From Macrostomum lignano (taxonomy: Eukaryota), in assembly GCA_002269645.1 (NCBI GenBank), contig NIVC01001474.1, forward strand, positions 165,807 through 229,806: a stretch of DNA of 64,000 nt. The letters run 5' to 3'. Of the stretch, positions 9,201 through 58,624 are shown one piece after another; the stretch's first letter is position 1, and every line of letters begins with the position of its first letter. The position numbers were made by a program, and so were the translations under genes. The notes below the pieces were generated by a model, which saw only the letters and a list, made by a program, of their open reading frames with translations, was not told the DNA's origin and made no database searches.

Positions 9201-12200
9201 ACATGATTTGATAGTCCATGGCTGAGATGATTTGATAGTCCATGGCTGACATGATTTGATAGTCCATGACTGACATGATTTGATAGTCCATGGCTGAGAT
9301 GATTTGATAGTCCATGGCTGACATGATTTGATAGTCCATGGCTGACATGATTTGATAGTCCATGGCTGACATGATTTGATAGTCCATGGCTGACATGATT
9401 TGATAGTCCATGGCTGAGATGATTTGATAGTCCATGGCTGAGATGATTTAATGGTCCATGGCTGAGATGACTTGATAGTCCATGGCTGACATGATTTGAT
9501 AGTCCATGGCTGAGATGACTTGATAGTCCATGACTGACATGATTTGATAGTCCATGACTGACAATATTTGATAGTCCATGGCTTAGATGACCCTAACCGA
9601 CCCTCCCAGGTGTTGCGCAACGCTCATGAGAGTCTGTGCCGACGTGCCCGCGAGTCCGCTTCATCAGCCGCGGGGCAGTCAACCATGCCAGACGGTGGCC
9701 CAGCCGCCTCCTCCGTGATGATGCCGCCAACGCCGCAGTCGCCGCCACCACCACCACCGAGGCCGCCACCACCGGCCGGGTCAGAGCATCAGCAGCATCA
9801 GCATCATCAGCAGCATCAGCAGCATCAAAATCAAGTAAACAAGCACCATCAGTCTCCGTCTCGAAGTCAGGAGCCGCTGAAATCGCGTTCGCAGCAGCAG
9901 CAGCAGCAGCAGCAGGCGCCGAGAATCATGGACGGCAGCGTGGACTCGGGTCCCGGAGACCTGGACCTGGACGGCTGCCTGCACTGGGAGGTGGCGCGGC
10001 TGCAGCGGCTGCTGGACCGGCTGGAAAGTCGGACAGCTCTGGTCACCGGCCGGACACGAATTGAGGAGGCTGTACTGGATGAGGATGAAGCCATGGTGAG
10101 GCCCAGAAACGAGGTGTACATACAGGCTGCTCATACAGGGTGTAGTCGTTGTAGAGTCAGACCGCTGATCTTCTACGTACTTTGGTCTTTGACCAAGGTA
10201 TCGAGAAAGACGTACAGGTGTAACGTGAGAAGCAGCAGGTGCTGGGGGCGATCTGCTGCATCATCCCCCAGTCTGCTCAAATCGATCGAGTCTGCTGAAG
10301 CAGCGGCTCACATCCTTTGAGCCAATACAGGGGACATGAGGGAAATATTTCCCAATCATCTCTTTCCCATTTATTCCCTTGCAACCTGTGCGGGGCACAG
10401 TGCCGGGTCACAGACACGGGTATTTAATAATCATATATGCGACATCAAAGCTGCAGAGTGGATTTGCAGCAGGGAGTGCAGGGTGGCTGCTGGCAAAGCG
10501 CCCGGACTGCAATGGAAAACATTGGGGATCGTAGGTGATGGGGGGTGCAGAAAAGTGCGCCTCTTGAACCTCCATTGCGCGCGCGCTCTCCCTCTGTCCC
10601 TCTCTCTCTCTGCATCTAGCTGGGTTGAAAAATTCTAACCCAGCGTTGCCTCAGTCTCCCTTGTGCATTTTCACTGGTGTGACTGTGCTTGTGTGTGTGA
10701 GTTCAGCTAGCATGAGCAGTGCATGCGGGGCCGCAAGCAGAGGACTAAGCTCAGAGAAAATTGAGGAATAAATCTCCCATGAGGCTGGTTAGAGGGAGCA
10801 TGGGGATTTGAGATTGTGCTAAAAGAAGAATGTGACGCCTCAGTGAATGGTTTCCCTTCTTTTGCAGTAATCCCGTTAGCTCAAATGGCTCAAGCTCAAA
10901 AAGGTTCTCTCCTACATGTTTTAGATCGCCGAATAGCAAATGGGAATTAAGTCAGTCAGTCAGTCAGTCAGTCAGTCAGTCAGTCAGTCAGTCAGTCAGT
11001 CAGTCAGTCAGTCAGTCAGTCAGTCAGTCAGTCAGTCAGTCAGTCAGTCAGTCAGTCAGTCAGTCAGTCAGTCAGTCAGTCAGTCAGTCAGTCAGTCAGT
11101 CAGTCAGTCAGTCAGTCAGTCAGTCAGTCAGTCAGTCAGTCAGTCAGTCAGTCAGTCAGTCAGTCAGTCAGTCAGTCAGTCAGTCAGTCAGTCAGTCAGT
11201 CAGTCAGTCAGTCAGTCAGTCAGTCAGTCAGTCAGTCAGTCAGTCAGTCAGTCAGTCAGTCAGTCAGTCAGTCAGTCAGTCAGTCAGTCAGTCAGTCAGT
11301 CAGTCAGTCAGTCAGTCAGTCAGTCAGTCAGTCAGTCAGTCAGTCAGTCAGTCAGTCAGTCAGTCAGTCAGTCAGTCAGTCAGTCAGTCAGTCAGTCAGT
11401 CAGTCAGTCAGTCAGTCAGTCAGTCAGTCAGTCAGTCAGTCAGTCAGTCAGTCAGTCAGTCAGTCAGTCAGTCAGTCAGTCAGTCAGTCAGTCAGTCAGT
11501 CAGTCAGTCAGTCAGTCAGTCAGTCAGTCAGTCAGTCAGTCAGTCAGTCAGTCAGTCAGTCAGTCAGTCAGTCAGTCAGTCAGTCAGTCAGTCAGTCAGT
11601 CAGTCAGTCAGTCAGTCAGTCAGTCAGTCAGTCAGTCAGTCAGTCAGTCAGTCAGTCAGTCAGTCAGTCAGTCAGTCAGTCAGTCAGTCAGTCAGTCAGT
11701 CAGTCAGTCAGTCAGTCAGTCAGTCAGTCAGTCAGTCAGTCAGTCAGTCAGTCAGTCAGTCAGTCAGTCAGTCAGTCAGTCAGTCAGTCAGTCAGTCAGT
11801 CAGTCAGTCAGTCAGTCAGTCAGTCAGTCAGTCAGTCAGTCAGTCAGTCAGTCAGTCAGTCAGTCAGTCAGTCAGTCAACTCTCTCCAGCGTGTCCTCTC
11901 CCTCATCACACCCCCTGACTTCATTCGCTTTTGAGCCCAGAAGAAAATTGGACTGCCGCTACACTAATTAGCGCCAGAGGAGAGGCATACAGCCAGCATG
12001 GATTCCTACCGCCAGCTTTGAGCATTTCGGCTTTTTTCTCAACTCGTCGAGTCGATGATGAGGGAGCGCGTTAGACAGAACTCTAAGTGTAGCTGGGAAG
12101 GGACTTTTAGGGGACTAATGATGGGGGACTTTAGAGCATACACAGTCGCTAGTTTTGCAAGCGATAATGCATGGTCAAAGAGGAACTTTTCAACCACAGC

Positions 12201-43955: not shown

Positions 43956-44667
43956 TTAAGATACTTAAATAATAGTTCACGAACTTTAAGAAGCATAAAA
44001 ATGAATTCAACACGGAAAACAATGATTTGCCAGGCAAGATTTGCCTAATTTAACAAAAAAAACTATTTGAATACTAAAAGAATCCTTATATTATATATCC
44101 TGATACTAAACACCACGTAGGAGCTTAAATAAAGAAACTAAATAGTTATCAATAATTAGTCAAGATAAAAAATAATGCAAAACTACAAGTAAGAATACAA
44201 TCGATTTTTAAGCAATAAAATATCGCAAATAGTGCATGGCTTAGTAGAAAGTGCAGCAAAATAACTATTGCTGAACATATTATTAAAATACAATACTATG
44301 TTTACTGACAAAAGTCAGTCTAAAGTGTAAGATTAATGTTCTTTAGTTACATAGAAATACTATATGTAAGCTTTAAACAGACTCATTGTGTTGTAAGCTT
44401 AGCACGATCAAATGCATCGCGAAAGCATAACGATTAAAAAATGTTAAAGTAAATATTCTCACGAATGATTATAAAGTTTGTGAAAATGTCACTGCGAGTG
44501 ATATTTTGGGAAAAAATCAAATCATTCAAAGGTGAGTGCAGGAGGTCGGTCAGTAAATTGAGTTGACCATTTATTTCCTGACCTTTAGCATGTCTTGACC
44601 CTACTCCGAAATAAAGAATAACAATAGAATTTGTATAGCAGTTTATGAAATGCTACAAAATACATCA

Positions 44668-45776
44668 CTGAGCCAAAGCTACTAATCACTTAGCCAAAGC
44701 TACTAATCACTCAGCCAAAGCTACTTATCACTCAGCCAAAGCTATTTATCACTCAGCCCCAAAGCTACTAATCACTCAGCCCCAAAGCTACTAATCACTC
44801 AGCCAAAGCTACTTATCACTCAGCCCCAAAGCTACTAATCACTCAGCCAAAGCTACTCGATCACTCAGCCAAAGCTACTAATCACTCAGCCCCAAAGCTA
44901 CTAATCACTCAGCCAAAGCTACTTATCACTCAGCCAAAGCTACTAATCACTCAGCCCCAAAGCTACTTATCACTCAGCCAAAGCTACTCGATCACTCAGC
45001 CAAAGCTACTAATCACTCAGCCCCAAAGCTACTAATCACTCAGCCAAAGCTACTCGATCACTCAGCCAAAGCTACTAATCACTCAGATATAAGCTACAAA
45101 TAACTCAGCCAAAGCTACTAATCACTCAGCCATAAGCTACAAATAACTCAGCCATAAGCTACAAATAACTCAGCCAAAGCTACTAATCACTCAGCCATAA
45201 GCTACAAATAACTCAGCCAAAGCTACTAATCACTCAGCCATAAGCTACAAATAACTCAGCCAAAGCTACTAATCACTCAGCCATAAGCTACAAATAACTC
45301 AGCCAAAGCTACTAATCACTCAGCCAAAGCTACTAATCACTCAGCCATAAGCTACTAATCACTCAGCCAAAGCTACTCGATCACTCAGCCAAAGCTACTA
45401 ATCACTCAGCCCCAAAGCTACTAATCACTCAGCCAAAGCTACTTATCACTCAGCCAAAGCTACTCGATCACTCAGCCAAAGCTACTAATCACTCAGCCCC
45501 AAAGCTACTAATCACTCAGCCAAAGCTACTCGATCACTCAGCCAAAGCTACTAATCACTCAGATATAAGCTACAAATAACTCAGCCAAAGCTACAAATAA
45601 CTCAGCCAAAGCTACTCATTCCTCAGCCAAAGCTACAAATAAATAACTCAGCCAAAGCTACTAATCCCTCAGCCAAAGCTACTAATCACTCAGCCAAAGC
45701 TACTAATCACTCAGCCAAAGCTACTAATAATTCAGCCAAAGCTAATAATCACTCAGCCAAAGCTACTAATCACTCA
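44668..45776. repeat. 21-bp minisatellite starting at the PRELID3 stop codon
   Basis: Unit aatcactcagccaaagctact. Confidence 0.95.
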
Positions 45777-46343
45777 GGACGAAGCATCAGCAGTGGTATC
45801 TGCTATTCGATTAGCAATGACCCACTCAATAGCCCTGGGACCTTTGGCAGCCATTCTGTCGTACACAAAATCTTCTAAAATAGTTTCCACTAGGCCACCA
45901 ATAGGCCACCAAGGACAGCAGATTCTGGCAGACTGCTGCAGAACTGTCCTTCCTGTGGGATTGTCTGGATGAGGTTTATACTCCAAGCGTTCCTCAAGTG
46001 TAATACCTCTGCTAAATGTAATATTCTTACTGTGCAATAGGTAACTCCTAGCTCTAGGATCTACCATAGTGTGCTCGCTACCGTACCAGACGTCAACATC
46101 CAGATCAATCAAGGAGTTAAACTGTCTGTAAAATCCTAAATTAGTCAACCGGTGTACCACACCTGTAAACAGCAGGCCGAATAATCTGTGAGTTCGAAGA
46201 ATGCCGTCCTCACTGACTGACCGAGACACCACATCTTGGCTTAAAACGCCATTAAACATTGGATTAGGATATTTATTCATAGCCGCTTCAACCACAGTCT
46301 CCCAGCTGTGCTCGAACACGTGACTGCGCTCCCACACTCGCAT
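45774..46343 (-). CDS. PRELID3: PRELI/MSF1 domain lipid-transfer protein (slowmo/PRELID3), intronless, 189 aa
   Basis: MRVWERSHVFEHSWETVVEAAMNKYPNP, ERLEYKPHPDNP, AIEWVI. True ATG at 46343; the ORF track started at a TTG. Confidence 0.9.
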   Translation of the reverse strand: MRVWERSHVFEHSWETVVEAAMNKYPNPMFNGVLSQDVVSRSVSEDGILRTHRLFGLLFTGVVHRLTNLGFYRQFNSLIDLDVDVWYGSEHTMVDPRARSYLLHSKNITFSRGITLEERLEYKPHPDNPTGRTVLQQSARICCPWWPIGGLVETILEDFVYDRMAAKGPRAIEWVIANRIADTTADASS

Positions 46344-46367
46344 GGCTGCCAAATTAACATGAGATTT

Positions 46368-46904: not shown

Positions 46905-47650
46905 GTTAAGGTTCAGGTGCAGTTTAGGTTAGAGTGTAGTTTAGGGTTTAGGTTACGGTTCAGATCAGGGTCTAGGTTAGGGTCCAGTTTAGGGTTTAGG
47001 TTACGGTTCAGATCAGGGTCTAGGTTACGGTTCAGATCAGGGTCTAGGTTAGGGTTCAGTTTAGGGTTTAGGTTACGGTTCAGATCAGGGTCTAGGTTAG
47101 GGTTCAGTTTAGGGTTTAGGTTACGGTTCAGATCAGGGTCTAGGTTAGGGTTCAGTTTAGGGTTTAGGTTACGGTTCAGATCAGGGTCCAGGTTAGGGTC
47201 CAGTTTAGGGTTTAGGTTACGGTTCAGATCAGGGTCTAGGTTAGGGTCCAGTTTAGGGTTTAGGTTACGGTTCAGATCAGGGTCTAGGTTAGGGTCCAGT
47301 TTAGGGTTTAGGTTACGGTTCAGATCAGGGTCTAGGTTAGGGTCCAGTTTAGGGTTTAGGTTACGGTTCAGATCAGGGTCTAGGTTACGGTTCAGATCAG
47401 GGTCTAGGTTAGGGTTCAGTTTAGGGTTTAGGTTACGGTTCAGATCAGGGTCTAGGTTAGGGTCCAGTTTAGGGTTTAGGTTACGGTTCAGATCAGGGTC
47501 CAGGTTAGGGTCCAGTTTAGGGTTTAGGTTACGGTTCAGATCAGGGTCCAGGTTAGGGTCCAGTTTAGGGTTTAGGTTACGGTTCAGATCAGGGTCTAGG
47601 TTAGGGTCCAGTTTAGGGTTTAGGTTAGGATTTAGGTCAGGGTTTAGGCT
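46905..47650 (+). repeat. Interstitial telomere-like 48-bp satellite built of TTAGGG-variant hexamers
   Basis: ttaggg tttagg ttacgg ttcaga tcaggg tctagg ttaggg tccagt. Confidence 0.9.
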
Positions 47651-47727
47651 AAAACTTGAAGGTAGAGATTAGGATCTGATTTTTCTATTGTCTATTTTCT
47701 TATTCCTTCATCAAACATATATAAGCC

Positions 47728-49406
47728 TCACATGGAAGTCACCCGCTCAATACCAATCAACCGACTCAACAAATCAATCCACTGAGCAGTTTTATTAACT
47801 AACATAATCTTGTTAGTCATCAGTTGGCTGCCCGGCTCTGACACATCAGCAGCAGGCAGCACTCGAACTCGGTGATAAAATCTGGCAAATTCTCGGCAGA
47901 GCTGCTCCAATCGGTGCACCAGCTGGTTTAAATCGCGATAGCAACAACAATCAGCAGAATTACTGAGCAGCAGATCAGTTTGGCACTGAGCCAATAAATC
48001 AACCAGGGTGTCCAGCTGACCCCAGGCCAACGCCCAGACTGAATTTTCATCAGTGGATCTGCTTGATGCAGCCAACTCGTCAAGTCCACCTGGCGCTGAT
48101 ACTCCAGCAGCTCGCTGCATCAGGGACTCAGCTCGGGCCCTGTTGTACAGGGCGAACAGCAGGGACCGCCGACGTTCCTGCGAGAACTTAGCCGTCTCCT
48201 GAGGCCGACACCAGAGCAACTCAGCGATCAAAACCGACTGTGCTAACCGACTTGACAGACTCACACCAGAATTGCTGTCCTCAATGCACCGATCTGAGAT
48301 TGATGAAGACACTTTGGCGATGTAGTCGGCGAGGCTGCAGTAGGAGGCTGGATCGACCTGGGAAGAGATTAAGAACAAGATGCCAATTTTGCTAAGACAT
48401 TGAAAAGTCGCAACTCTAAGCGCCAGTGAGCAATTTCTCTTGGACTATTCTGAAATAAAAGATCCGGGAAAACTGATCGGGGTTAGCTTTAATCCGTCCA
48501 AACCTCGCACACCGCTCCCCCCGCTTCATTCCTCAACTCAAGTCTGCCGCGGCGTTGCTAAGCTGCGTCACTCGCAAAGATTGAGAGACTTTACCTGCAC
48601 TCTCAAAAGCGGTGATCACAGACAGAATCTTCTGTGATGGCGACTTACACAAGTGAAATTTTCATTTTGTCCATAAATTATTGAATCAATCATTCACTGA
48701 CCTTCATATACTACTTACTATTGTACTATATTAGGTACTTTTAAGAAAAAATATCGCCAGCTCAAATCCTTACCGGACCAACTATCAAGTCGCGCGGGGC
48801 CCTCGAGTCATCTCTATGAGTAAAATTTAGCAAATCAGACGCAGAAGACACTACTAACGAAATGCGTCCGTCAGTAGTAAGCCAGTCACGATATCTCGAG
48901 TCAAACTCAACCAGACCGCGGTTCAAAGTAGCAGTGTTTGCACTACTGTTAGTAGTAGGCAAACCTTCCAAATTCAATAGTCGATGAGCCAAGCAGCCCC
49001 ATAGCAGGGCACGCAGAGACCGGAACTCGCAATCGGGATAATAGCGAACAAACAGCACTGGACTGACAGATGACTTTGCCGAATAATCTTGCCGCAATTG
49101 AGGCACTTTGGCATTCAAAATTCGATCAAGACACACCGCTCGATTCAATATCAAACGCAGAGCGATAATTGGTGCTGTTGACGAGTAGGTCGCGAGTTCG
49201 CGTCGGGCAATAATCAATTTCAATTGTGGATGATTGTCAATGCTAGCTATTAAATCTGTAGTTGATCTGTTAGAAGACTGTGATTTTAAAATTAGTAGAA
49301 GGTCACACGGTTCAGATCGATAGGTGAGCTGGTGGCACCGTTGAATGCTAGAGATTGCAGCAGTGCCCGTGCAGCTGAGAAGCAGGTGGAGACGAATGAC
49401 TGACAT
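47728..49406 (-). CDS. DALRD3: DALR anticodon-binding domain-containing protein 3, 2 exons, ~420 aa
   Basis: Exons 49406-48774 and 48357-47728 (phase 0, gtaagg...cccag). C-terminal DALR-like motifs FALYNRARAESL, LCREFARFYHRVRVL and terminal LIGIERVTSM. Confidence 0.75.
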
Positions 49407-50121
49407 CAGGGACTGGGATTGGCTGCGGGCATGAGGTTGACAGGTGAGTCATTTAGATTATTCAGACCCAAATAGCATTAGCAACTCCCTCACGGGGGAT
49501 TTCTCAAGTTACTAAAATGACCACTCACCAAACATCTACGATAAATGTGTGAACATATAGAACAATATAAAACATCCATCTAGTAGTACACAGCTCTGTT
49601 ACATTGTATCTACAATTGTCAACAGAATAGGATTGTAAATAACTAGATGGGCTACTCAGTTCTATATACTCAGTAAAACAGCTTTCTACTTTCAGTTCAG
49701 TAGCAAAGAAGAATACATAAGCTATTTTATAAAAATAGAGGCAGCTGAAATCACTTTGATAAGTTTAGAAGCCCAAGCTTGCAGGCGTAAAACAACTTGC
49801 TAATTGGTTCAGCAATAATGTACATTGGCCAGTCCACTGAAGTGTACATGGCAGCTTTGGGCTGGAATTCTGAGAAAGGCAATAAAATTTGGGGTGGGGG
49901 ATAGTGTGGAACGGCGCGGTTGGAGGGTTTAAGATCTGGGGGGGGGGGTAAGAGCCATAAGAGCTTTAAAAATACATCAAAATGCTTCGGTTTAAATTAC
50001 TACTGAACTGAAAGTAGCTTACATGCAAATGTCCATCTAGTTGCTCTAGTACGAGTATCAGTGGATTAGTGATGCATTTATAATGAACCAAAAAAAAACA
50101 AAACACTTCAACAGCAATTAC

Positions 50122-53100
50122 TCACCAAACTTGACAATCAACAAACAGGTCTTTGAGTTGTTCAGCTGGCGGCAACTTCTGTCCAATGAACACGATTCGT
50201 TGCAGCTGTTGCTGGGCGGAACAACCATCAGTATCGTTAGAAACTGGAGCCGGCCGCAATTCGAACAGCTCGTACACCCCCTGCACGGAGTAAAGAGCTG
50301 GGGACGAAGCTTCACAGCTTTCGTCTATGAGGCGGAGCAGGCCCTGGTTGAGTAGTTGAGTAGATTAATTAGTCTGCAAGAATCTAACTTATATCATGAC
50401 AAACTAATTGCAATTAACTGATTGCTGTGTACAGTGAGCCTGTAAGGTTTTTTGGAGACATCTTAACACGCACTGCAATTAAGAGAGTCAACCAAAAATA
50501 CAGCCTTAGACAGATGAGTCCACTGAATAGACAGGTGAGAGTCCACTGAATAGACAGATGAGTCCACTGAATAGACAGATGAGTCCACTGAATAGACAGG
50601 TGAGAGTCCACTGAATAGACAGGTGATAGTCCACTGAATAGACAGGTGAGATTCCACTGAATAGACAGGTGAGAGTCAAGTGAATAGACAGGTGAGAGTC
50701 AAGTGAATAGACAGGTGAGAGTCCACTGAATAGACAGGTGATAGTCCACTGAATAGACAGGTGAGAGTCCACTGAATAGACAGGTGAGAGTCAAGTGAAT
50801 AGACAGGTGAGAGTCCACTGAATAGACAGGTGAGAGTCAAGTGAATAGACAGGCGAGAGTCCACTGAATAGACAGGTGACAGTCAACTGAATAGACAGGT
50901 GAGATTCCACTGAATAGACAGGTGAGAGTCAAGTGAATAGACAGGTGAGAGTCCACTGAATAGACAGGTGAGAGTCAAGTGAATAGACAGGTGAGAGTCC
51001 ACTGAATAGACAGGTGAGATTCCACTGAATAGACAGGTGAGAGTCAAGTGAATAGACAGGTGAGAGTCAAGTGAATAGACAGGTGAGAGTCAACTGAATA
51101 GACAGGTGAGAGTCAACTGAATAGACAGGCGAGAGTCAACTGAATAGACAGGTGACAGTCAACTGAATAGACAGGTGAGATTCCACTGAATAGACAGGTG
51201 AGATTCCACTGAATAGACAGGTGAGAGTCCACTGAATAGACAGGTGAGAGTCAAGTGAATAGACAGGTGAGAGTCAACTGAATAGACAGGCGAGAGTCAA
51301 CTGAATAGACAGGTGACAGTCAACTGAATAGACAGGTGAGATTCCACTGAATAGACAGGTGAGAGTCCACTGAATAGACAGGTGAGAGTCAAGTGAATAG
51401 ACAGGTGAGAGTCAAGTGAATAGACAGGTGAGATTCCACTGAATAGACAGGTGAGAGTCAAGTGAATAGACAGGTGAGAGTCAACTGAATAGACAGGCGA
51501 GAGTCAACTGAATAGACAGGTGAGAGTCAAGTGAATAGACAGGTGAGATTCCACTGAATAGACAGGTGAGATTCCACTGAATAGACAGGTGAGAGTCCAC
51601 TGAATAGACAGGTGAGAGTCAAGTGAATAGACAGGTGAGAGTCCACTGAATAGACAGGTGAGAGTCAAGTGAATAGACAGGCCAGAGTCCACTGATTAGA
51701 CAGGTGACAGTCAACTGAATATACAGGTGAGATTCCACTGAATAGACAGGTGAGAGTCAAGTGAATAGACAGGTGAGAGTCAAGTGAATAGACAGGTGAG
51801 AGTCCACTGAATAGACAGGTGATAGTCCACTGAATAGACAGGTGAGAGTCCACTGAATAGACAGGTGAGAGTCAAGTGAATAGACAGGTGAGAGTCCACT
51901 GAATAGACAGGTGAGAGTCAAGTGAATAGACAGGTGAGAGTCCACTGAATAGACAGGTGAGATTCCACTGAATAGACAGGTGAGAGTCAAGTGAATAGAC
52001 AGGTGAGAGTCAAGTGAATAGACAGGTGAGAGTCAACTGAATAGACAGGTGAGAGTCAACTGAATAGACAGGCGAGAGTCAACTGAATAGACAGGTGACA
52101 GTCAACTGAATAGACAGGTGAGATTCCACTGAATAGACAGGTGAGAGTCCACTGAATAGACAGGTGAGAGTCAAGTGAATAGACAGGTGAGAGTCCACTG
52201 AATAGACAGGTGAGATTCCACTGAATAGACAGGTGAGAGTCCACTGAATAGACAGGTGAGAGTCAACTGAATAGACAGGTGAGAGTCAAGTGAATAGACA
52301 GGTGAGATTCCACTGAATAGACAGGTGAGAGTCAAGTGAATAGACAGGTGAGAGTCCACTGAATAGACAGGTGAGAGTCAACTGAATAGACAGGCGAGAG
52401 TCAACTGAATAGACAGGTGACAGTCAACTGAATAGACAGGTGAGATTCCACTGAATAGACAGGTGAGAGTCCACTGAATAGACAGGTGAGAGTCAAGTGA
52501 ATAGACAGGTGAGAGTCCACTGAATAGACAGGTGAGAGTCAACTGAATAGACAGGTGACAGTCAACTGAATAGACAGGTGAGAGTCAACTGAATAGACAG
52601 GTGACAGTCAACTGAATAGACAGGTGAGATTCCACTGAATAGACAGGTGAGAGTCCACTGAATAGACAGGTGAGAGTCAAGTGAATAGACAGGTGAGAGT
52701 CAAGTGAATAGACAGGTGAGAGTCAAGTGAATAGACAGGTGAGAGTCAAGTGAATAGACAGGTGAGAATCAAGTGAATAGACAGGTGAGAGTCAAGTGAA
52801 TAGACAGGTGAGAGTCCACTGAATAGACAGGTGAGAGTCAAGTGAATAGACAGGTGAGAGTCAAGTGAAAAGACAGGTGAGAGTCAAGTGAATAGACAGG
52901 TGAGAGTCCACTGAATAGACAGGTGAGAGTCAAGTGAATAGACAGGTGAGAGTCAAGTGAATAGACAGGTGAGAGTCAACTGAATAGACAGGTGAGAGTC
53001 AACTGAATAGACAGGCGAGAGTCAACTGAATAGACAGGTGAGAGTCAAGTGAATAGACAGGTGAGATTCCACTGAATAGACAGGTGAGATTCCACTGAAT

Positions 53101-56100
53101 AGACAGGTGAGAGTCCACTGAATAGACAGGTGAGAGTCAAGTGAATAGACAGGTGAGAGTCCACTGAATAGACAGGTGAGAGTCAAGTGAATAGACAGGC
53201 CAGAGTCCACTGATTAGACAGGTGACAGTCAACTGAATATACAGGTGAGATTCCACTGAATAGACAGGTGAGAGTCAAGTGAATAGACAGGTGAGAGTCA
53301 AGTGAATAGACAGGTGAGAGTCCACTGAATAGACAGGTGATAGTCCACTGAATAGACAGGTGAGAGTCCACTGAATAGACAGGTGAGAGTCAAGTGAATA
53401 GACAGGTGAGAGTCCACTGAATAGACAGGTGAGAGTCAAGTGAATAGACAGGTGAGAGTCCACTGAATAGACAGGTGAGATTCCACTGAATAGACAGGTG
53501 AGAGTCAAGTGAATAGACAGGTGAGAGTCAAGTGAATAGACAGGTGAGAGTCAACTGAATAGACAGGTGAGAGTCAACTGAATAGACAGGCGAGAGTCAA
53601 CTGAATAGACAGGTGACAGTCAACTGAATAGACAGGTGAGATTCCACTGAATAGACAGGTGAGAGTCCACTGAATAGACAGGTGAGAGTCAAGTGAATAG
53701 ACAGGTGAGAGTCCACTGAATAGACAGGTGAGATTCCACTGAATAGACAGGTGAGAGTCCACTGAATAGACAGGTGAGAGTCAACTGAATAGACAGGTGA
53801 GAGTCAAGTGAATAGACAGGTGAGATTCCACTGAATAGACAGGTGAGAGTCAAGTGAATAGACAGGTGAGAGTCCACTGAATAGACAGGTGAGAGTCAAC
53901 TGAATAGACAGGCGAGAGTCAACTGAATAGACAGGTGACAGTCAACTGAATAGACAGGTGAGATTCCACTGAATAGACAGGTGAGAGTCCACTGAATAGA
54001 CAGGTGAGAGTCAAGTGAATAGACAGGTGAGAGTCCACTGAATAGACAGGTGAGAGTCAACTGAATAGACAGGTGACAGTCAACTGAATAGACAGGTGAG
54101 AGTCAACTGAATAGACAGGTGACAGTCAACTGAATAGACAGGTGAGATTCCACTGAATAGACAGGTGAGAGTCCACAGAATAGACAGGTGAGAGTCCACT
54201 GAATAGACAGGTGAGAGTCAAGTGAATAGACAGGTGAGAGTCAAGTGAATAGACAGGTGAGAGTCAAGTGAATAGACAGGTGAGAATCAAGTGAATAGAC
54301 AGGTGAGAGTCAAGTGAATAGACAGGTGAGAGTCCACTGAATAGACAGGTGAGAGTCAAGTGAATAGACAGGTGAGAGTCAAGTGAATAGACAGGTGAGA
54401 GTCAAGTGAATAGACAGGTGAGAGTCCACTGAATAGACAGGTGAGAGTTCACTGAATAGACAGGTGAGAGTCAAGTGAATAGACAGGTGAGAGTTCACTG
54501 AATAGACAGGTGAGAGTTCACTGAATAGACAGGTGAGAGTTCACTGAATAGACAGGTGAGAGTTCACTGAATAGACAGGTGAGATTTTTTCACATTTCAC
54601 ACAATGAGACACATATTGAGTTCACACAATGAACACAATGAGACACATGATGAGTTCACACAATGAACACAATGAGACACATTATAAGTTCACACAATGA
54701 GACACATATTGAGTTCACAGAATAGACAGGTGAGATTTTTTCACATTTCACACAATGAGACACATATTGAGTTCACACAATGAACACAATGAGACACATG
54801 ATGAGTTCACACAATGAACACAATGAGACACATTATAAGTTCACACAATGAGACACATATTGAGTTCACACAATGAACACAATGAGACACATGATGAGTT
54901 CACACAATGAACACAATGAGACACATTATAAGTTCACACAATAAGACACACGAGTTCACATAATAAGACACGAGTTCACATAATAAGACATGAGTTCACA
55001 TAATAAGACAGAGTTCACATAATAAGACACGAGTTCACATAATAAGACACGAGTTCACATATTAAGACACGAGTTCACATAATAAGACACGAGTTCACAC
55101 AATAAGACACACGAGTTCACATAATAAGACACACGAGTTCACATAATAAGACACAAGTTCACACAATAAGACACACGAGTTCACATAATAAGACACACGA
55201 GTTCACATAATAAGACACACGAGTTCACATAATAAGACACACGAGTTCACATAATAAGACACACGAGTTCACATAATAAGACACACGAGTTCACATAATA
55301 AGACACACGAGTTCACATAATAAGACACACGAGTTCACACAAGAAGACACACGAGTTCACATAATAAGACACACGAGTTCACACAAAAAGAGACATATTT
55401 TGTCACCTTAGTCCTCAGAAACGCAGCTTCGGGAAACATTGGTTTATCGCTTTGCCACAACAGGTCGCCGAGCAGTCGTTCAACTCGATCTTGCTCGAAC
55501 ACGGCGTCAGGCTCGAAGTCGATAGCCAGAGTGCCGACATCAGCTCGCAGTTTGGTTCGATGCGACTCGCTACTCGCGCCAGTGTCGTGCAGTCGGTCAG
55601 CCAAGTCGGTAGCATTGCGATAGGCCCCCAGGCCTAGGATGGCATCCAGCGGGGCGATGCCTCGCTCACTTTTAGCGATTCTACAAGCGGAGTTGATGCC
55701 TCTGACCAGAGCTTCCACACTGTCCAATGAGGTCAACTCCGCAGCTGAAGATGATGCTGACTGATTCGATAGCAGGTCGGTTTTGCTTAGCAGCACGGTG
55801 TCAGCGCAGGCTACCTGGCGTTGCCATTCGACTTCTGAGAACTGGCGGCTGGCATTCAGGCTGTCCACCTGATTGGCGTTCGGGGATCGGATCGGTAAAC
55901 AAATCCCATCACCAATCCTGATCCCATTACCAATCCTGAATCCCTGATCCCATTACCAATCCTGATCCCATTACCAATCCTGATCCCATTACCAATCCTG
56001 AATCCCTGATCCCATTACCAATCCTCAATCCCTAATCCTATTGCCTGAAATCTGATCCCATTACCTGAATCCCTTGTCCCTTTACCTAAATCCCTGATAC

Positions 56101-58589
56101 CATTACAAATCCCGGATCCCTGATACCATTACAAATCCCGAATCCCTGATACCATTACAAATCCCGAATCCCTGATCCCATTATATGAATTCCTGATCCG
56201 ATTATCCGAATCCCTGATCCCATTATCCGAATCCCTGATCCCATTATCCGAATCCCTGATCTCATTATCCGAATCCCTGATCCCATCATTTGAATCCCTG
56301 ATCCCATTAGCTGAATCCCTGATTCCATTACCTGAATCATTGATCCCATTTACCTGAATCATTGATCCCATTACCTGAATCCCTGATCCCATTACCTGAA
56401 TCCCTGATCCTATTACCTGAATCCCTGATCCTATTACCTGAATCCCTGATCCCATTACCTGAATCCCTGATCCCATTACCCGAATCCCTGATCTTATTAC
56501 CTGAATCCCTGATCCCATTACCTGAATCCTTGATCCCATTACCTGAATCCCTGATCCCATCATCTGAATCCCTGATCACATTACGTGAATCCCTGATCCC
56601 ATCATCTGAATCCCTGATCCCATTAGCTGAATCCCTGATCCCATTACCTGAATCCCTGATCCCATCATCTGAATCCCTGATCCCATCAACTGAATCCCTG
56701 ATCCCATTATCTGAATCCCTGATCCCATCAACTGAATCCCTGATCCCATTATCTGAATCCCTGATCCCATCAACTGAATCCCTGATCCCATCATCTGAAT
56801 CTGATCCCATTACCTGAATCTCTGATCCCATCATCTGAATCCCTGATCCCATCATCTGAATCCCTGATCCCATCATATGAATCCCTGATCCCATCATCTG
56901 AATCCCTGATCCCATCATCTGAATCCCTGATCCCATCATCTGAATCCCTGATCCCATTACGTGAATCCCTGGTCCCATTATAGACTCTGATCCCACATCT
57001 CACAGCTAAAACCCAGACCCACTCCAAACCAGCTCACCACAGTGACAAAGCCGTCCAGACAGACCAAACTCTCGAGCTGCTCATCCAACCAAAACAAAGC
57101 CGCAATGGGCCCCGGCTCAGCCAATCCAGTTGTCTCCAGCAGCACGTGATCAAATCGACCTCGACGCTCCATCAGCCGTTCAATCGCGGCAACACCAGCA
57201 TGTTTCAACGAGCAGCAGAGGCAGCCATTGCCCAGCTCCAGCCATTCTTCGTAGCGCTTCTGACCATCGCTAGAGTTCTTGCTGTCGCCTGAACGGATTG
57301 TGAGTGAGTAGCTAGTTGATAATTATTGACTTTAGATCACACCCCAGGTCTCACCTCATCGATCTAATGGCTCAGTCACAGTCACAACGCTAAACAAAGC
57401 AGCACTGTAGATGGGATTTTTGGGATAATATAGGCAAAAGATTCCTTCAGATAGGATTTGGGGGGGATTTTAGGCAAAAGATCCCTTCAGATGGGATTTG
57501 GGGGAATTTTAGGCAAAAGATCCCTTCAGATGGGATTTTAAGAAATTTTAGGCAAAATATTGCTTCAGATGGGATTTAGGGGGATTTTAGGCGAAAGATC
57601 CATTCAGATGGGATTTAGGGGGATTTTAGGCAAAATATCCCTTCAGATGGGATTTTAAGAAATTTTAGGCAAAATATTCCTTCAGATGGGATTTGGGGGG
57701 ATTTTAGGGAAAATATTCATTCCGTTGGGATTTTACGTTTTACGATTCCAAAGAGTCGTATCTGTAGAATCACTGAGTTGCGTCTAAAGCGCATCTGCGT
57801 CACGTCACTTTATGAATTATAATCGCCTTTCACATTTATAACAACTCTATTTTGTCTACTTGAGTTAGTAGTTTTTTCGCAACTCTTACGATCCTGCAAC
57901 TCACGTGATGCGCTCGTGACTCAACAGTCGCCTCTCTGTTACATTACAGTCGTTTTGAGTTGTTAAAAAAAGTCACAGGAGTCACCCAAGAGTCGCTAGA
58001 GTCACTTGTGAGTTGTTTGCAATGACTCTAAGTAATAGTAATTCTAGTGGCCCATCGCGGCGCTCTGATGTGCCAGCATAAAGTGCAGTCACATCAATTT
58101 GAGGCTAAATTGAAATCTCAGCTTGCCTCTGCTCGTGCAATTAACGGCCTTGAAGGCCAACCCCTAAGGCACTTTAAAGTGTACATGCCTAACGATAAAT
58201 AATGTTAGGGCCGCTGTGTGTGTGTGCCTGTGTGTATGACCGCATAGATATTTGCATGGTACGTAAGACTCTCAAAAATTACCTGTCTGATTGTCCTCAG
58301 CAACAGTGAGAGCCGCCTCAACAGCGGCAGAGTCGCCAAATTCGTTCATAATTACAGCAATCCGTCTGCCGTGCTGCTCAGTGAGAATGTAGTTCAACAA
58401 AGTAGTCTTGCCAGCTCCCAGGTAGCCAGTGATCACTGTGACAGGCACTGGAGGCAGATCAGTGACTGCAGGCTCAGCATTGGCTAAGCTACTACTGGGT
58501 ATTTCATCCAGACTCACCAGATCTGGACAATCTTCATCATCATCTTGAGCAGCTTTAGTGGCACTGTTAAGATTCTCTGGCTGATTCAT
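50122..58589 (-). CDS. ZNG1: Zn-regulated GTPase metallochaperone ZNG1 / COBW domain protein (COG0523), 4 exons, ~413 aa
   Basis: Exons 58589-58283, 57288-57038, 55868-55407, 50343-50122. CPDLV motif, Walker A ITGYLGAGKTT, NEFG, WLELGNGCLCCS, LETTGLAEPGP, SKTDL, LRTK|GLL, VQGVYELF, RIVFIGQKL. The last exon was missed by the ORF track and sits behind a 5.06-kb intron. Confidence 0.93.
50508..54585. repeat. 23-bp satellite, ~4.1 kb, with a 1518-bp higher-order repeat (ZNG1 intron 3)
   Basis: Unit ctgaatagacaggtgagagtcca with variants; five identical ORF pairs are offset by exactly 1518 bp (66 x 23). Confidence 0.97.
54590..55385. repeat. 20-22-bp minisatellite (ZNG1 intron 3, donor end)
   Basis: Unit gagttcacataataagacac(ac). 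Confidence 0.92.
55905..56985. repeat. 21-bp minisatellite (ZNG1 intron 2)
   Basis: Unit tgaatccctgatccca(ttacc/tcatc). Confidence 0.95.
57408..57720. repeat. 39-bp minisatellite (ZNG1 intron 1)
   Basis: Unit ggcaaaatatcccttcagatgggatttagggggatttta. Confidence 0.88.
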
Positions 58590-58610
58590 TTCTCTGTCAC
58601 TGTCCCCCAG

Positions 58611-58624
58611 CTGAAAGAAATAGT
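58611..58624 (-). promoter_or_regulatory. Splice acceptor upstream of ZNG1 (outron/trans-splice or 5' UTR intron)
   Basis: actatttctttcag|CTG GGG GAC AGT GAC AGA GAA ATG; 21 nt to the ATG. Confidence 0.55.

Follow-up and report, generated by a model that had tools for sequence, protein, structure and literature searches.

A donor site over the stop codon of a ZNG1 gene in Macrostomum lignano may join it in frame to a DALR-domain gene by alternative cis-splicing

The window considered here, the whole stretch of 64,000 nt of Macrostomum lignano DNA that was analysed (NIVC01001474.1), carries a CobW/ZNG1-type GTPase gene, a gene for a DALR_1-domain protein downstream of it and then a PRELI-family gene (Pfam). 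All genes in this finding are read on the minus strand, and coordinates are window positions. The ZNG1 stop codon and the DALR ATG lie 716 nt apart on the same strand, which is below the 1 kb threshold for operon spacing in this species (PMC8629364). The ZNG1 stop codon is overlapped by a 5' splice site (donor 1 in the following list), and splicing from this site could either rebuild the stop codon or carry the reading frame on into the DALR gene.

58283-58617, minus strand: ZNG1 5' acceptor ctttcag and coding exon 1; the acceptor fits the spliced-leader (SL) motif, the GenBank coding sequence (CDS) starts at 58610 right after the AG, and the ATG is at 58589.
57038-57288, minus strand: ZNG1 exon 2 with the CxCC motif (GCLCCS); exact match in the reconstruction of the GenBank protein PAA67572.1, and Pfam cobW.
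55407-55868, minus strand: ZNG1 exon 3 (PAA67572.1 reconstruction).
50126-50343, minus strand: ZNG1 last coding exon up to the donor (PAA67572.1 reconstruction); when unspliced it continues to TGA 50124-50122 and ends ...CQVW.
50120-50130, minus strand: donor 1, GTTTG/GTGAGT, overlapping the ZNG1 stop; cut 50126/50125, phase 2; used in PAA67572.1 and in the paralogue PAA85774.1, and identical in all three loci compared.
49534-50119, minus strand: 586-nt segment between 11-nt direct repeats, with inverted repeats 50042-49997 and 49706-49641; present in all three loci.
49529-49619, minus strand: alternative acceptor acaattgtag (AG 49611-49610) and 81-nt exon 49609-49529; the PAA67572.1 CDS range ends at 49609, and the reconstruction is exact.
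49523-49533, minus strand: donor 2, a second GTTTG/GTGAGT copy; cut 49529/49528, 106 nt upstream of the DALR acceptor; used in UniProt A0A1I8F3B8, core kept in all three loci.
49424-49484, minus strand: branch-like CTAAT (49481-49477) and AG-free zone of about 60 nt preceding acceptor A (script check).
49423-49429, minus strand: acceptor A, cccgcag; exon start 49422, in frame for the fusion; homologous site used in PAA85774.1 and A0A1I8F3B8.
49413-49417, minus strand: acceptor B, cccag; exon start 49412, in phase for an SL AUG; no annotation uses acceptor B.
48774-49422, minus strand: DALR-gene exon 1 (ATG 49406-49404; 3' donor GGTCCG/GTAAGG); homologous joins in PAA85774.1.
47728-48357, minus strand: DALR-gene last exon with the Pfam DALR_1 domain, stop 47730-47728 (Pfam and PAA85774.1 joins).
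Across the ZNG1-DALR junction: predicted tryptic peptide of the fusion, DLFVDCQVCQSQSLMSVIR.

The 3' end of ZNG1 reads CAA GTT TGG TGA GTA, and its TGA (50124-50122) lies inside TTTG/GTGAGT. A preliminary description of this DNA had placed a phase 2 donor at 50126/50125 over the stop codon, which direct reading and a script reproduce to the base; it had also called the donor perfect, which is true of the intron side (GTGAGT), while the exon side, TTG, matches the consensus solely at -1. The branch-like CTAAT proposed near 49480 is found at 49481-49477, and the AG-free zone of about 60 nt extends from 49483 to 49425, with no AG between one ending at 49485 and that at 49424-49423. When the donor is joined to acceptor A, TG+C CAA TCC CAG TCC CTG ATG runs in frame to the DALR ATG at 49406, and the open reading frame (ORF) spliced from ATG 58589 has 838 aa and zero internal stops, as had been predicted. 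The next AG (49414-49413), when joined to the phase 2 donor, reads TGT CCC TGA (Cys-Pro-stop), with a TGA overlapping the DALR ATG, and a spliced leader ending in AUG would at this site be in frame with DALR; both had been described correctly. These features are unconvincing by themselves, because the count of GTGAGT in the window is close to chance (19 copies on one strand and 21 on the other, against about 15.6 expected per strand), a G-TGA-GT embedding is expected from composition for about 1.4% of TGA stops, and the chance of an in-frame acceptor is one in three. It is the deposited annotation that lifts the stop-codon donor above chance.

Similar sites are seen in the neighbouring coding sequence. 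A third copy of TGGTGAGT lies in ZNG1 exon 1 (58508-58520), within the codons of the CPDLVSL motif (CTG GTG AGT), and forms a strong donor-like site in coding sequence. The DALR stop codon is itself overlapped by a donor-like GTGAGG (TCC ATG TGA GGC, phase 2; 47726-47736), from which a join to the PRELI acceptor is out of frame. The idea that operon genes generally end in GTGAG was considered but not supported; among six TGA stops examined, G precedes only those of ZNG1 and DALR, of which the latter is out of frame with PRELI.

In GenBank, the window encodes PAA67572.1 (BOX15_Mlig025027g1, 419 aa), whose CDS spans 58610-49609. Its locus (L001; NIVC01001474.1, Mlig_3_7) matches the window at 100% identity along 24.4 kb and is reversed relative to it, so that the window coordinate equals 68611 minus the L001 coordinate. 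The protein begins LGDSDRE..., with its first base directly after the ctttcag acceptor, as would be expected if the transcript had been cut at an SL site. At its other end it reads ...FVDCQV and lacks the final Trp, and the CDS range nonetheless extends 517 nt beyond the Val codon. The sole reconstruction that fits consists of 58610-58283, 57288-57038, 55868-55407, 50343-50126 and the single base 49609, a total of 1260 nt that translates to exactly this protein followed by a stop. Since this reconstruction is unique, the deposited model must join donor 1 to ttgtag/A (49610/49609), remaking the stop codon as TG/A. The cccgcag acceptor that had been proposed as the partner of donor 1 is therefore not the annotated partner at the window locus, although it is the partner at a paralogue, in PAA85774.1.

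Three loci were compared, namely the window (NIVC01001474.1), L002 (NIVC01000305.1) and L003 (NIVC01003194.1), with identities to the window of 97-98% across the region for L002 and 94-96% for L003. PAA85774.1 (BOX15_Mlig027886g1, 806 aa) is encoded by L002 and is a member of the 90% cluster of PAA67572.1. Across the junction it reads ...FVDCQVCQSQSLMSVIR..., that is, ...LKDLFVDCQV-C-QSQSL-MSVIRHHLLLSCTG..., and it extends to the DALR C-terminus; the predicted in-frame junction ...DCQV-C-QSQSL-MSVIR thus exists in a deposited protein, at a paralogue and with the same donor and acceptor. Joining 13758 (TG) to 14476 (after CCCGCAG) in L002, followed by GGTCCG/GTAAGG to CCCAG/GTCGAT, gives the last 498 residues of PAA85774.1 exactly. 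Donor 1, the ttgtag acceptor, the core of donor 2, CTAAT, both DALR acceptors and the DALR ATG are identical in all three loci, and none of them interrupts the fusion ORF, which in L003 stays open across an in-frame 3-nt indel.

Two of the three copies have 1-nt deletions in ZNG1, one in a C-run of exon 1 in L002 (~9990-10001) and the other in exon 3 of L003 (GCGCCG to GCCCG, ~11820-11851). These deletions explain a 5'-partial CDS of 806 aa and a truncated CDS of 265 aa, and may be either long-read assembly errors or real decay of duplicates. The "SSLANAEP" 5' end of the paralogue CDS was considered as an internal SL site and rejected, as it is instead the first open codon after the 1-nt C-run deletion in exon 1.

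The published annotation pipeline took STAR-mapped RNA-seq through StringTie and TACO (isoform-frac 0.75) and added a de novo transcriptome mapped with BLAT (PMC5730564). TBONE then cut the models wherever SL or poly(A) signals occurred, and TransDecoder supplied the ORFs, with no ab initio step described (PMC5730564). From this description we infer that the annotated junctions derive from RNA reads or transcripts. Older UniProt models (WormBase ParaSite), of which there are four at these loci, split ZNG1 at a minisatellite intron and lead from the last ZNG1 exon through donor 1 to DALR at acceptors 49374 or 49062, with one non-canonical junction. They were given little weight and serve only to show that gene-builders repeatedly chose these donors. 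A UniProt model, A0A1I8F3B8, joins donor 2 to acceptor A (MFYIVLYVHTFIVDV-C-QSQSLMSVIR). Three generations of gene models conflict at this locus.

The sequence between the two genes holds further elements, of which a second copy of GTTTGGTGAGT, the acceptor ttgtag and the 81-nt exon bounded by both went unnoticed in the preliminary description. The 11-mer GTTTGGTGAGT has two exact copies on the minus strand (50130-50120 and 49533-49523; spacing 597 nt) and none elsewhere in the window, where about 0.02 copies per strand would be expected. The first base of the 81-nt exon, A, completes a TG/A stop with donor 1, and the exon has no in-frame stop besides this junction TGA. The flanks of the two 11-mers are unrelated beyond the 11-mer, which rules out an extended duplication of the ZNG1 3' end. 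The 586-nt segment between them could be an old insertion, in that the 11-nt repeat resembles a target-site duplication; no other copy of the segment was found in about 110 kb of sequence searched. If it is an insertion, the ancestral state would have been a single donor 106 nt from the acceptor, near both a typical operon spacing and the size of a small intron, and the insertion would have created both donor 2 and the stop-introducing 81-nt exon. In M. lignano, operon spacing peaks near 100 nt after repeats are subtracted (PMC8629364). Within the segment there is a 21-nt inverted repeat, 95% complementary (49997-50017 and 49686-49706), and another pair at 50033-50042 and 49641-49650. The predicted fold of the 516-nt intron includes a 21-bp long-range stem, at an overall z-score of just -1.6; such a stem would, according to the model, bring donor 1 near the ttgtag acceptor.

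The upstream protein, called ZNG1 in the preliminary description, is aptly named. ZNG1 proteins are GTPases that deliver zinc to METAP1 in a GTP-dependent way. In the protein of the window, the GTPase domain is of the G3E P-loop type (Pfam cobW, E=7.7e-48, residues 49-229; Walker A GYLGAGKTT), and the CobW_C domain covers profile positions 5-93 of 94 and ends three residues before the stop (Pfam). A CxCC metal-binding motif in the GTPase domain is the defining feature of ZNG1, a COG0523/G3E zinc metallochaperone (PMC10642216), and the motif is present here as NGCLCCS, invariant in an alignment with eight orthologues. The best matches outside Macrostomum show 38-42% identity over at least 90% of the query, and the named ones are mostly ZNG1 or COBW domain-containing protein. 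The domains, the motif and the naming of orthologues all fit, and membership in ZNG1 is well supported. An acidic N-terminal extension, DDDEDCPDLVSL, aligns with EDxP[DE]LV of the orthologues and is the probable counterpart of the flexible acidic extension that contacts the MAP1 zinc finger. The eight orthologues, from Schistosoma to a fungus and 352-413 aa long, end within 0-3 residues of ...CQV(W), so ZNG1 is, judged by this alignment and by the CobW_C match, complete without the DALR part.

The downstream protein has a C-terminal DALR_1 domain (Pfam, E=4.3e-07, 30.5 bits against a cut-off of 22.3), which covers profile positions 2-117 of 117 and reaches the C-terminus. Over the 423-aa model, Pfam shows nothing else at E up to 1, and there is no arginyl-tRNA synthetase catalytic domain. 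A phmmer search of 1.84 billion representatives returned only M. lignano proteins as relatives, a PDB sequence search gave no match, and the AlphaFold model has a predicted local distance difference test (pLDDT) score of 35. The downstream gene had been called DALRD3; a DALR-domain gene that lacks the synthetase domain is indeed present, but orthology to animal DALRD3 could not be shown, and the name therefore rests on domain content. Animal DALRD3 binds METTL2 and directs m3C32 on tRNA-Arg (PMC7237682). The ratio of non-synonymous to synonymous substitution (dN/dS) in the DALR ORF is about 0.4 between copies, a value that indicates purifying selection on the ORF. By sequence comparison the two halves are separate genes in other taxa, the DALR half appearing as a lineage-specific addition. 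Exon 1 of the DALR gene contains a short-intron-like in-frame stretch of 42 nt (49267-49308; GTGTGA...TAACAG), which is removed in A0A1I8G2R1 and coding in PAA85774.1. A DALR model with these 42 nt (49308-49267) removed, an extra exon "NSPREIAHWRLELRLFN" and a candidate 37-nt exon was rejected, because in the GenBank CDS ...DLIVGP is followed immediately by VDPASYC... and the 42 nt are retained.

In M. lignano, SL trans-splicing affects about 30% of the genes, and about 15% belong to operons whose spacing is below 1 kb; the spliced leader is 35 nt long and has ATG as its last bases, cis donors follow GT[G/A]AG and SL acceptors favour [T/C]TNCAG (PMC8629364). The ZNG1 and PRELI acceptors (TTTCAG) fit the SL motif, whereas the DALR acceptors CCGCAG and TCCCAG miss it. 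The next downstream gene is annotated separately, in contrast to the DALR gene, and its feature is as follows.

45774-46367, minus strand: PRELI-family gene, next downstream; separate annotation, acceptor ttttcag fits the SL motif.

An SL-derived ATG would share the frame of the main ORF, uninterrupted by a stop, at 58611/58610 (ZNG1), 49413/49412 (DALR) and 46367/46366 (PRELI), and the GenBank CDSs of ZNG1 and PRELI are 5'-partial, starting at or a few bases from the acceptor. At none of the three loci is a DALR gene bounded on its own; the genes called there comprise PRELI, a zinc-finger gene and either ZNG1 or the fusion. At L003, ZNG1 (Mlig009362g4) and PRELI (Mlig009362g5) bear consecutive gene numbers within a single transcriptional unit. 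A collection of 15 billion proteins contains no exact stand-alone DALR protein of 420, 422 or 441 aa. The interval from ZNG1 to DALR lacks both AATAAA and ATTAAA and contains just TATAAA (50082 and 49731) and AATAAT (49462). According to the outron rule (Conrad et al. 1993), as far as it is quoted in PMC8629364, an acceptor is trans-spliced only if there is no upstream donor in cis, and two strong donors upstream of the DALR acceptor would by the rule as quoted favour cis-splicing. The switch between cis- and trans-splicing that had been proposed is upheld as regards its cis half, the donor being functional in an annotation built from RNA-seq, but gene boundaries, the g4/g5 numbering and the acceptor motif, all of them indirect evidence, give no SL support for DALR. 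The switch looks cis/cis rather than cis/trans, and the DALR protein is probably made without a separate SL-capped mRNA.

Taken together, these observations lead us to propose, as a somewhat better than even proposition, that ZNG1 and DALR form one transcription unit in which alternative cis-splicing at the stop-codon donor gives either ZNG1 alone or a ZNG1-DALR fusion. If donor 1 is unused, translation would stop at the TGA and yield ZNG1 ending ...CQVW. If donor 1 is joined to ttgtag/A (49610/49609), the TG/A stop would be rebuilt and ZNG1 would end ...CQV, after which donor 2, at the end of the 81-nt exon, could splice on to the DALR acceptor cccgcag. If donor 1 is joined instead to cccgcag/C (49423/49422), the stop would be removed and an 838-aa ZNG1-Cys-QSQSL-DALR fusion produced. 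The proportions of the isoforms and the translation of the fusion we infer. A stronger version, that DALR protein exists mainly, or even solely, as the C-terminal part of the ZNG1 fusion, with the choice set by an insertion-derived 81-nt exon with its duplicated donor, is doubtful and put forward only as a speculation.

Several observations weigh against alternative cis-splicing as proposed. The isoform annotated in the window is the stop-exon form and not the fusion, which is annotated at the paralogue, and the junctions are known solely via deposited CDS coordinates. With the loci 94-98% identical, multi-mapping could have put an isoform at the wrong copy, and as the intergenic region is about 97% identical throughout, little can be read into the conservation of its splice signals. 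None of the best 120 ZNG1 homologues carries the DALR domain (PF05746), so that the fusion has no precedent among them. The N-terminus of DALR (MSVIRLHLLLSCTGTAAISS...) resembles a free N-terminus of the targeting or signal type, which would make no sense inside a fusion, and acceptor B is in phase for an SL AUG, like the acceptors of both neighbours. The lack of an annotated DALR-only gene is weak negative evidence, as DALR may be weakly expressed and SL reads could be hidden for that reason. This last point and the phase of acceptor B bear on the model of the preliminary description, in which the two genes are an operon pair and DALR is mainly SL trans-spliced at 49412 to give a free protein, in competition with the cis fusion. 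Such an arrangement would suit the SL and operon frequencies of the species and a leader that ends in ATG (PMC8629364), the 716-nt spacing on one strand and the AUG phase that acceptor B shares with the ZNG1 and PRELI acceptors, while the AG-free zone and branch motif suit any functional acceptor. We nevertheless hold it to be possible rather than probable, given that no SL-bounded DALR gene is annotated at the three loci even though the ZNG1 and PRELI CDSs begin at acceptors, that g4 and g5 are consecutive numbers, that CCGCAG and TCCCAG miss [T/C]TNCAG where the neighbours' TTTCAG fits, that two strong donors lie upstream (by the outron rule as quoted) and that no AATAAA/ATTAAA separates the genes.

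It is also conceivable that these are two independent genes whose junctions are rare splicing noise on a polycistronic or read-through precursor, or assembler artefacts, and that no consequential fusion protein exists. Almost 7% of assembled M. lignano transcripts are multi-gene precursor RNAs (PMC5730564), the older UniProt models are poor and disagree on the acceptor (49374, 49062, 49422), ZNG1 is frameshifted in two of the three loci, and the fusion has no counterpart among the best 120 homologues. We consider this unlikely, however, since at a TACO isoform-frac of 0.75 only dominant paths should survive, donor 1 is used at two independent loci, the junctions are exact GT-AG joins in which the reading frame is either kept or rebuilt, and no copy interrupts the fusion frame, not even the most diverged one with its in-frame 3-nt indel. 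Pure coincidence, a donor-like hexamer that lies over a stop codon and is never spliced, would accord with the chance frequency of GTGAGT, the roughly 1.4% of TGA stops set in G-TGA-GT and the one-in-three odds of an in-frame acceptor; but the GenBank CDSs at two loci are irreproducible without splicing at donor 1 unless the deposited annotation is wrong, and this explanation is highly improbable.

The surroundings of the two genes are consistent with multi-gene transcriptional units, in that the recognisable genes of the window (36-58610) form a long one-directional cluster, essentially all on the minus strand. They include an AMPK-like kinase, a phosphomevalonate-kinase-like gene, a sirtuin, an EF-hand/MICU-like gene and a C2H2 zinc finger in addition to PRELI, DALR and ZNG1. 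The last ZNG1 intron holds a 4.07-kb minisatellite (50516-54584; 177 copies of a 23-nt unit), and this intron, exactly where the older UniProt models break ZNG1, is just ~670 nt in the paralogue L002; further minisatellites lie in ZNG1 introns at 54599-55395, 55903-56981 and 57409-57733. The gaps between PRELI and its neighbours are filled by minisatellites at 44664-45777 and 46922-47648 (21-nt and 48-nt units), in agreement with the published remark on repeat-inflated operon spacing in M. lignano. An Rfam scan of the whole window gave zero matches, and exact look-ups led to an encoding contig neither for the PRELI protein nor for the UniProt models P0001, P0002 and P0004.

The fusion CDS is already known in the sense that it is deposited in GenBank as a hypothetical protein; no mention of the fusion or of its gene ids was found in the M. 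lignano literature that was searched. If the proposal is correct, a single 5' splice site that holds a stop codon would let one splicing decision switch between a metallochaperone and a fusion of two enzyme systems. The locus would also be a natural case of an upstream donor turning a would-be trans-splice acceptor into a cis acceptor, in an animal that separates co-transcribed genes by trans-splicing. We know of no functional link between ZNG1 and DALRD3. A real fusion protein would tie ZNG1, with its zinc delivery to METAP1, to a DALRD3-like specificity factor for tRNA-Arg, and if DALR were made mainly or only in the fusion, this would be a Rosetta-stone hint of a connection between zinc supply and tRNA modification (m3C32 on tRNA-Arg). 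As M. lignano is tractable by transgenesis, a ZNG1-DALR link is testable in the animal itself. In practical terms, users of M. lignano gene sets will miscount both ZNG1 and DALR genes.

Among known systems, the closest resemblance is to conjoined genes, or transcription-induced chimeras, such as human TMEM189-UBE2V1 (Kua-UEV) and TNFSF12-TNFSF13 (TWE-PRIL). As in those cases, adjacent genes on the same strand, which have stand-alone homologues elsewhere, are co-transcribed, and cis-splicing drops the upstream stop together with the intergenic region to give an in-frame fusion alongside an upstream-only product. Unlike them, the ZNG1 donor lies in the last coding exon and itself contains the stop, and it is not that of a penultimate exon, so that a single site decides between stop and fusion; moreover, no downstream-only transcript is annotated here, and M. 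lignano resolves many of its units by SL trans-splicing. The locus is also reminiscent of stop-introducing "poison" cassette exons and exonised insertions, in that an alternative exon of 81 nt, in a candidate insertion, brings a stop into an otherwise open fusion frame. It differs from them in that the stop is formed across the junction (TG/A) and the exon's donor repeats the upstream one exactly, perhaps as a target-site duplication. With the SL operons of M. lignano (Wudarski 2017, PMC5730564; Ustyantsev and Berezikov 2021, PMC8629364) the locus shares a same-strand cluster, a multi-gene unit, the TTTCAG acceptors of the neighbours and a spacing under 1 kb inflated by repeat-like sequence; in contrast to those operons, the boundary from ZNG1 to DALR is annotated as cis-spliced, DALR has no SL boundary and its acceptors are off the SL motif. 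Finally, the two strong donors upstream of the DALR acceptor predict cis-splicing under the outron-to-intron rule in its quoted form, as is annotated, and whereas that rule comes, according to the same quotation, from engineered Caenorhabditis elegans genes, the arrangement described here is a natural one, kept in three paralogous copies.

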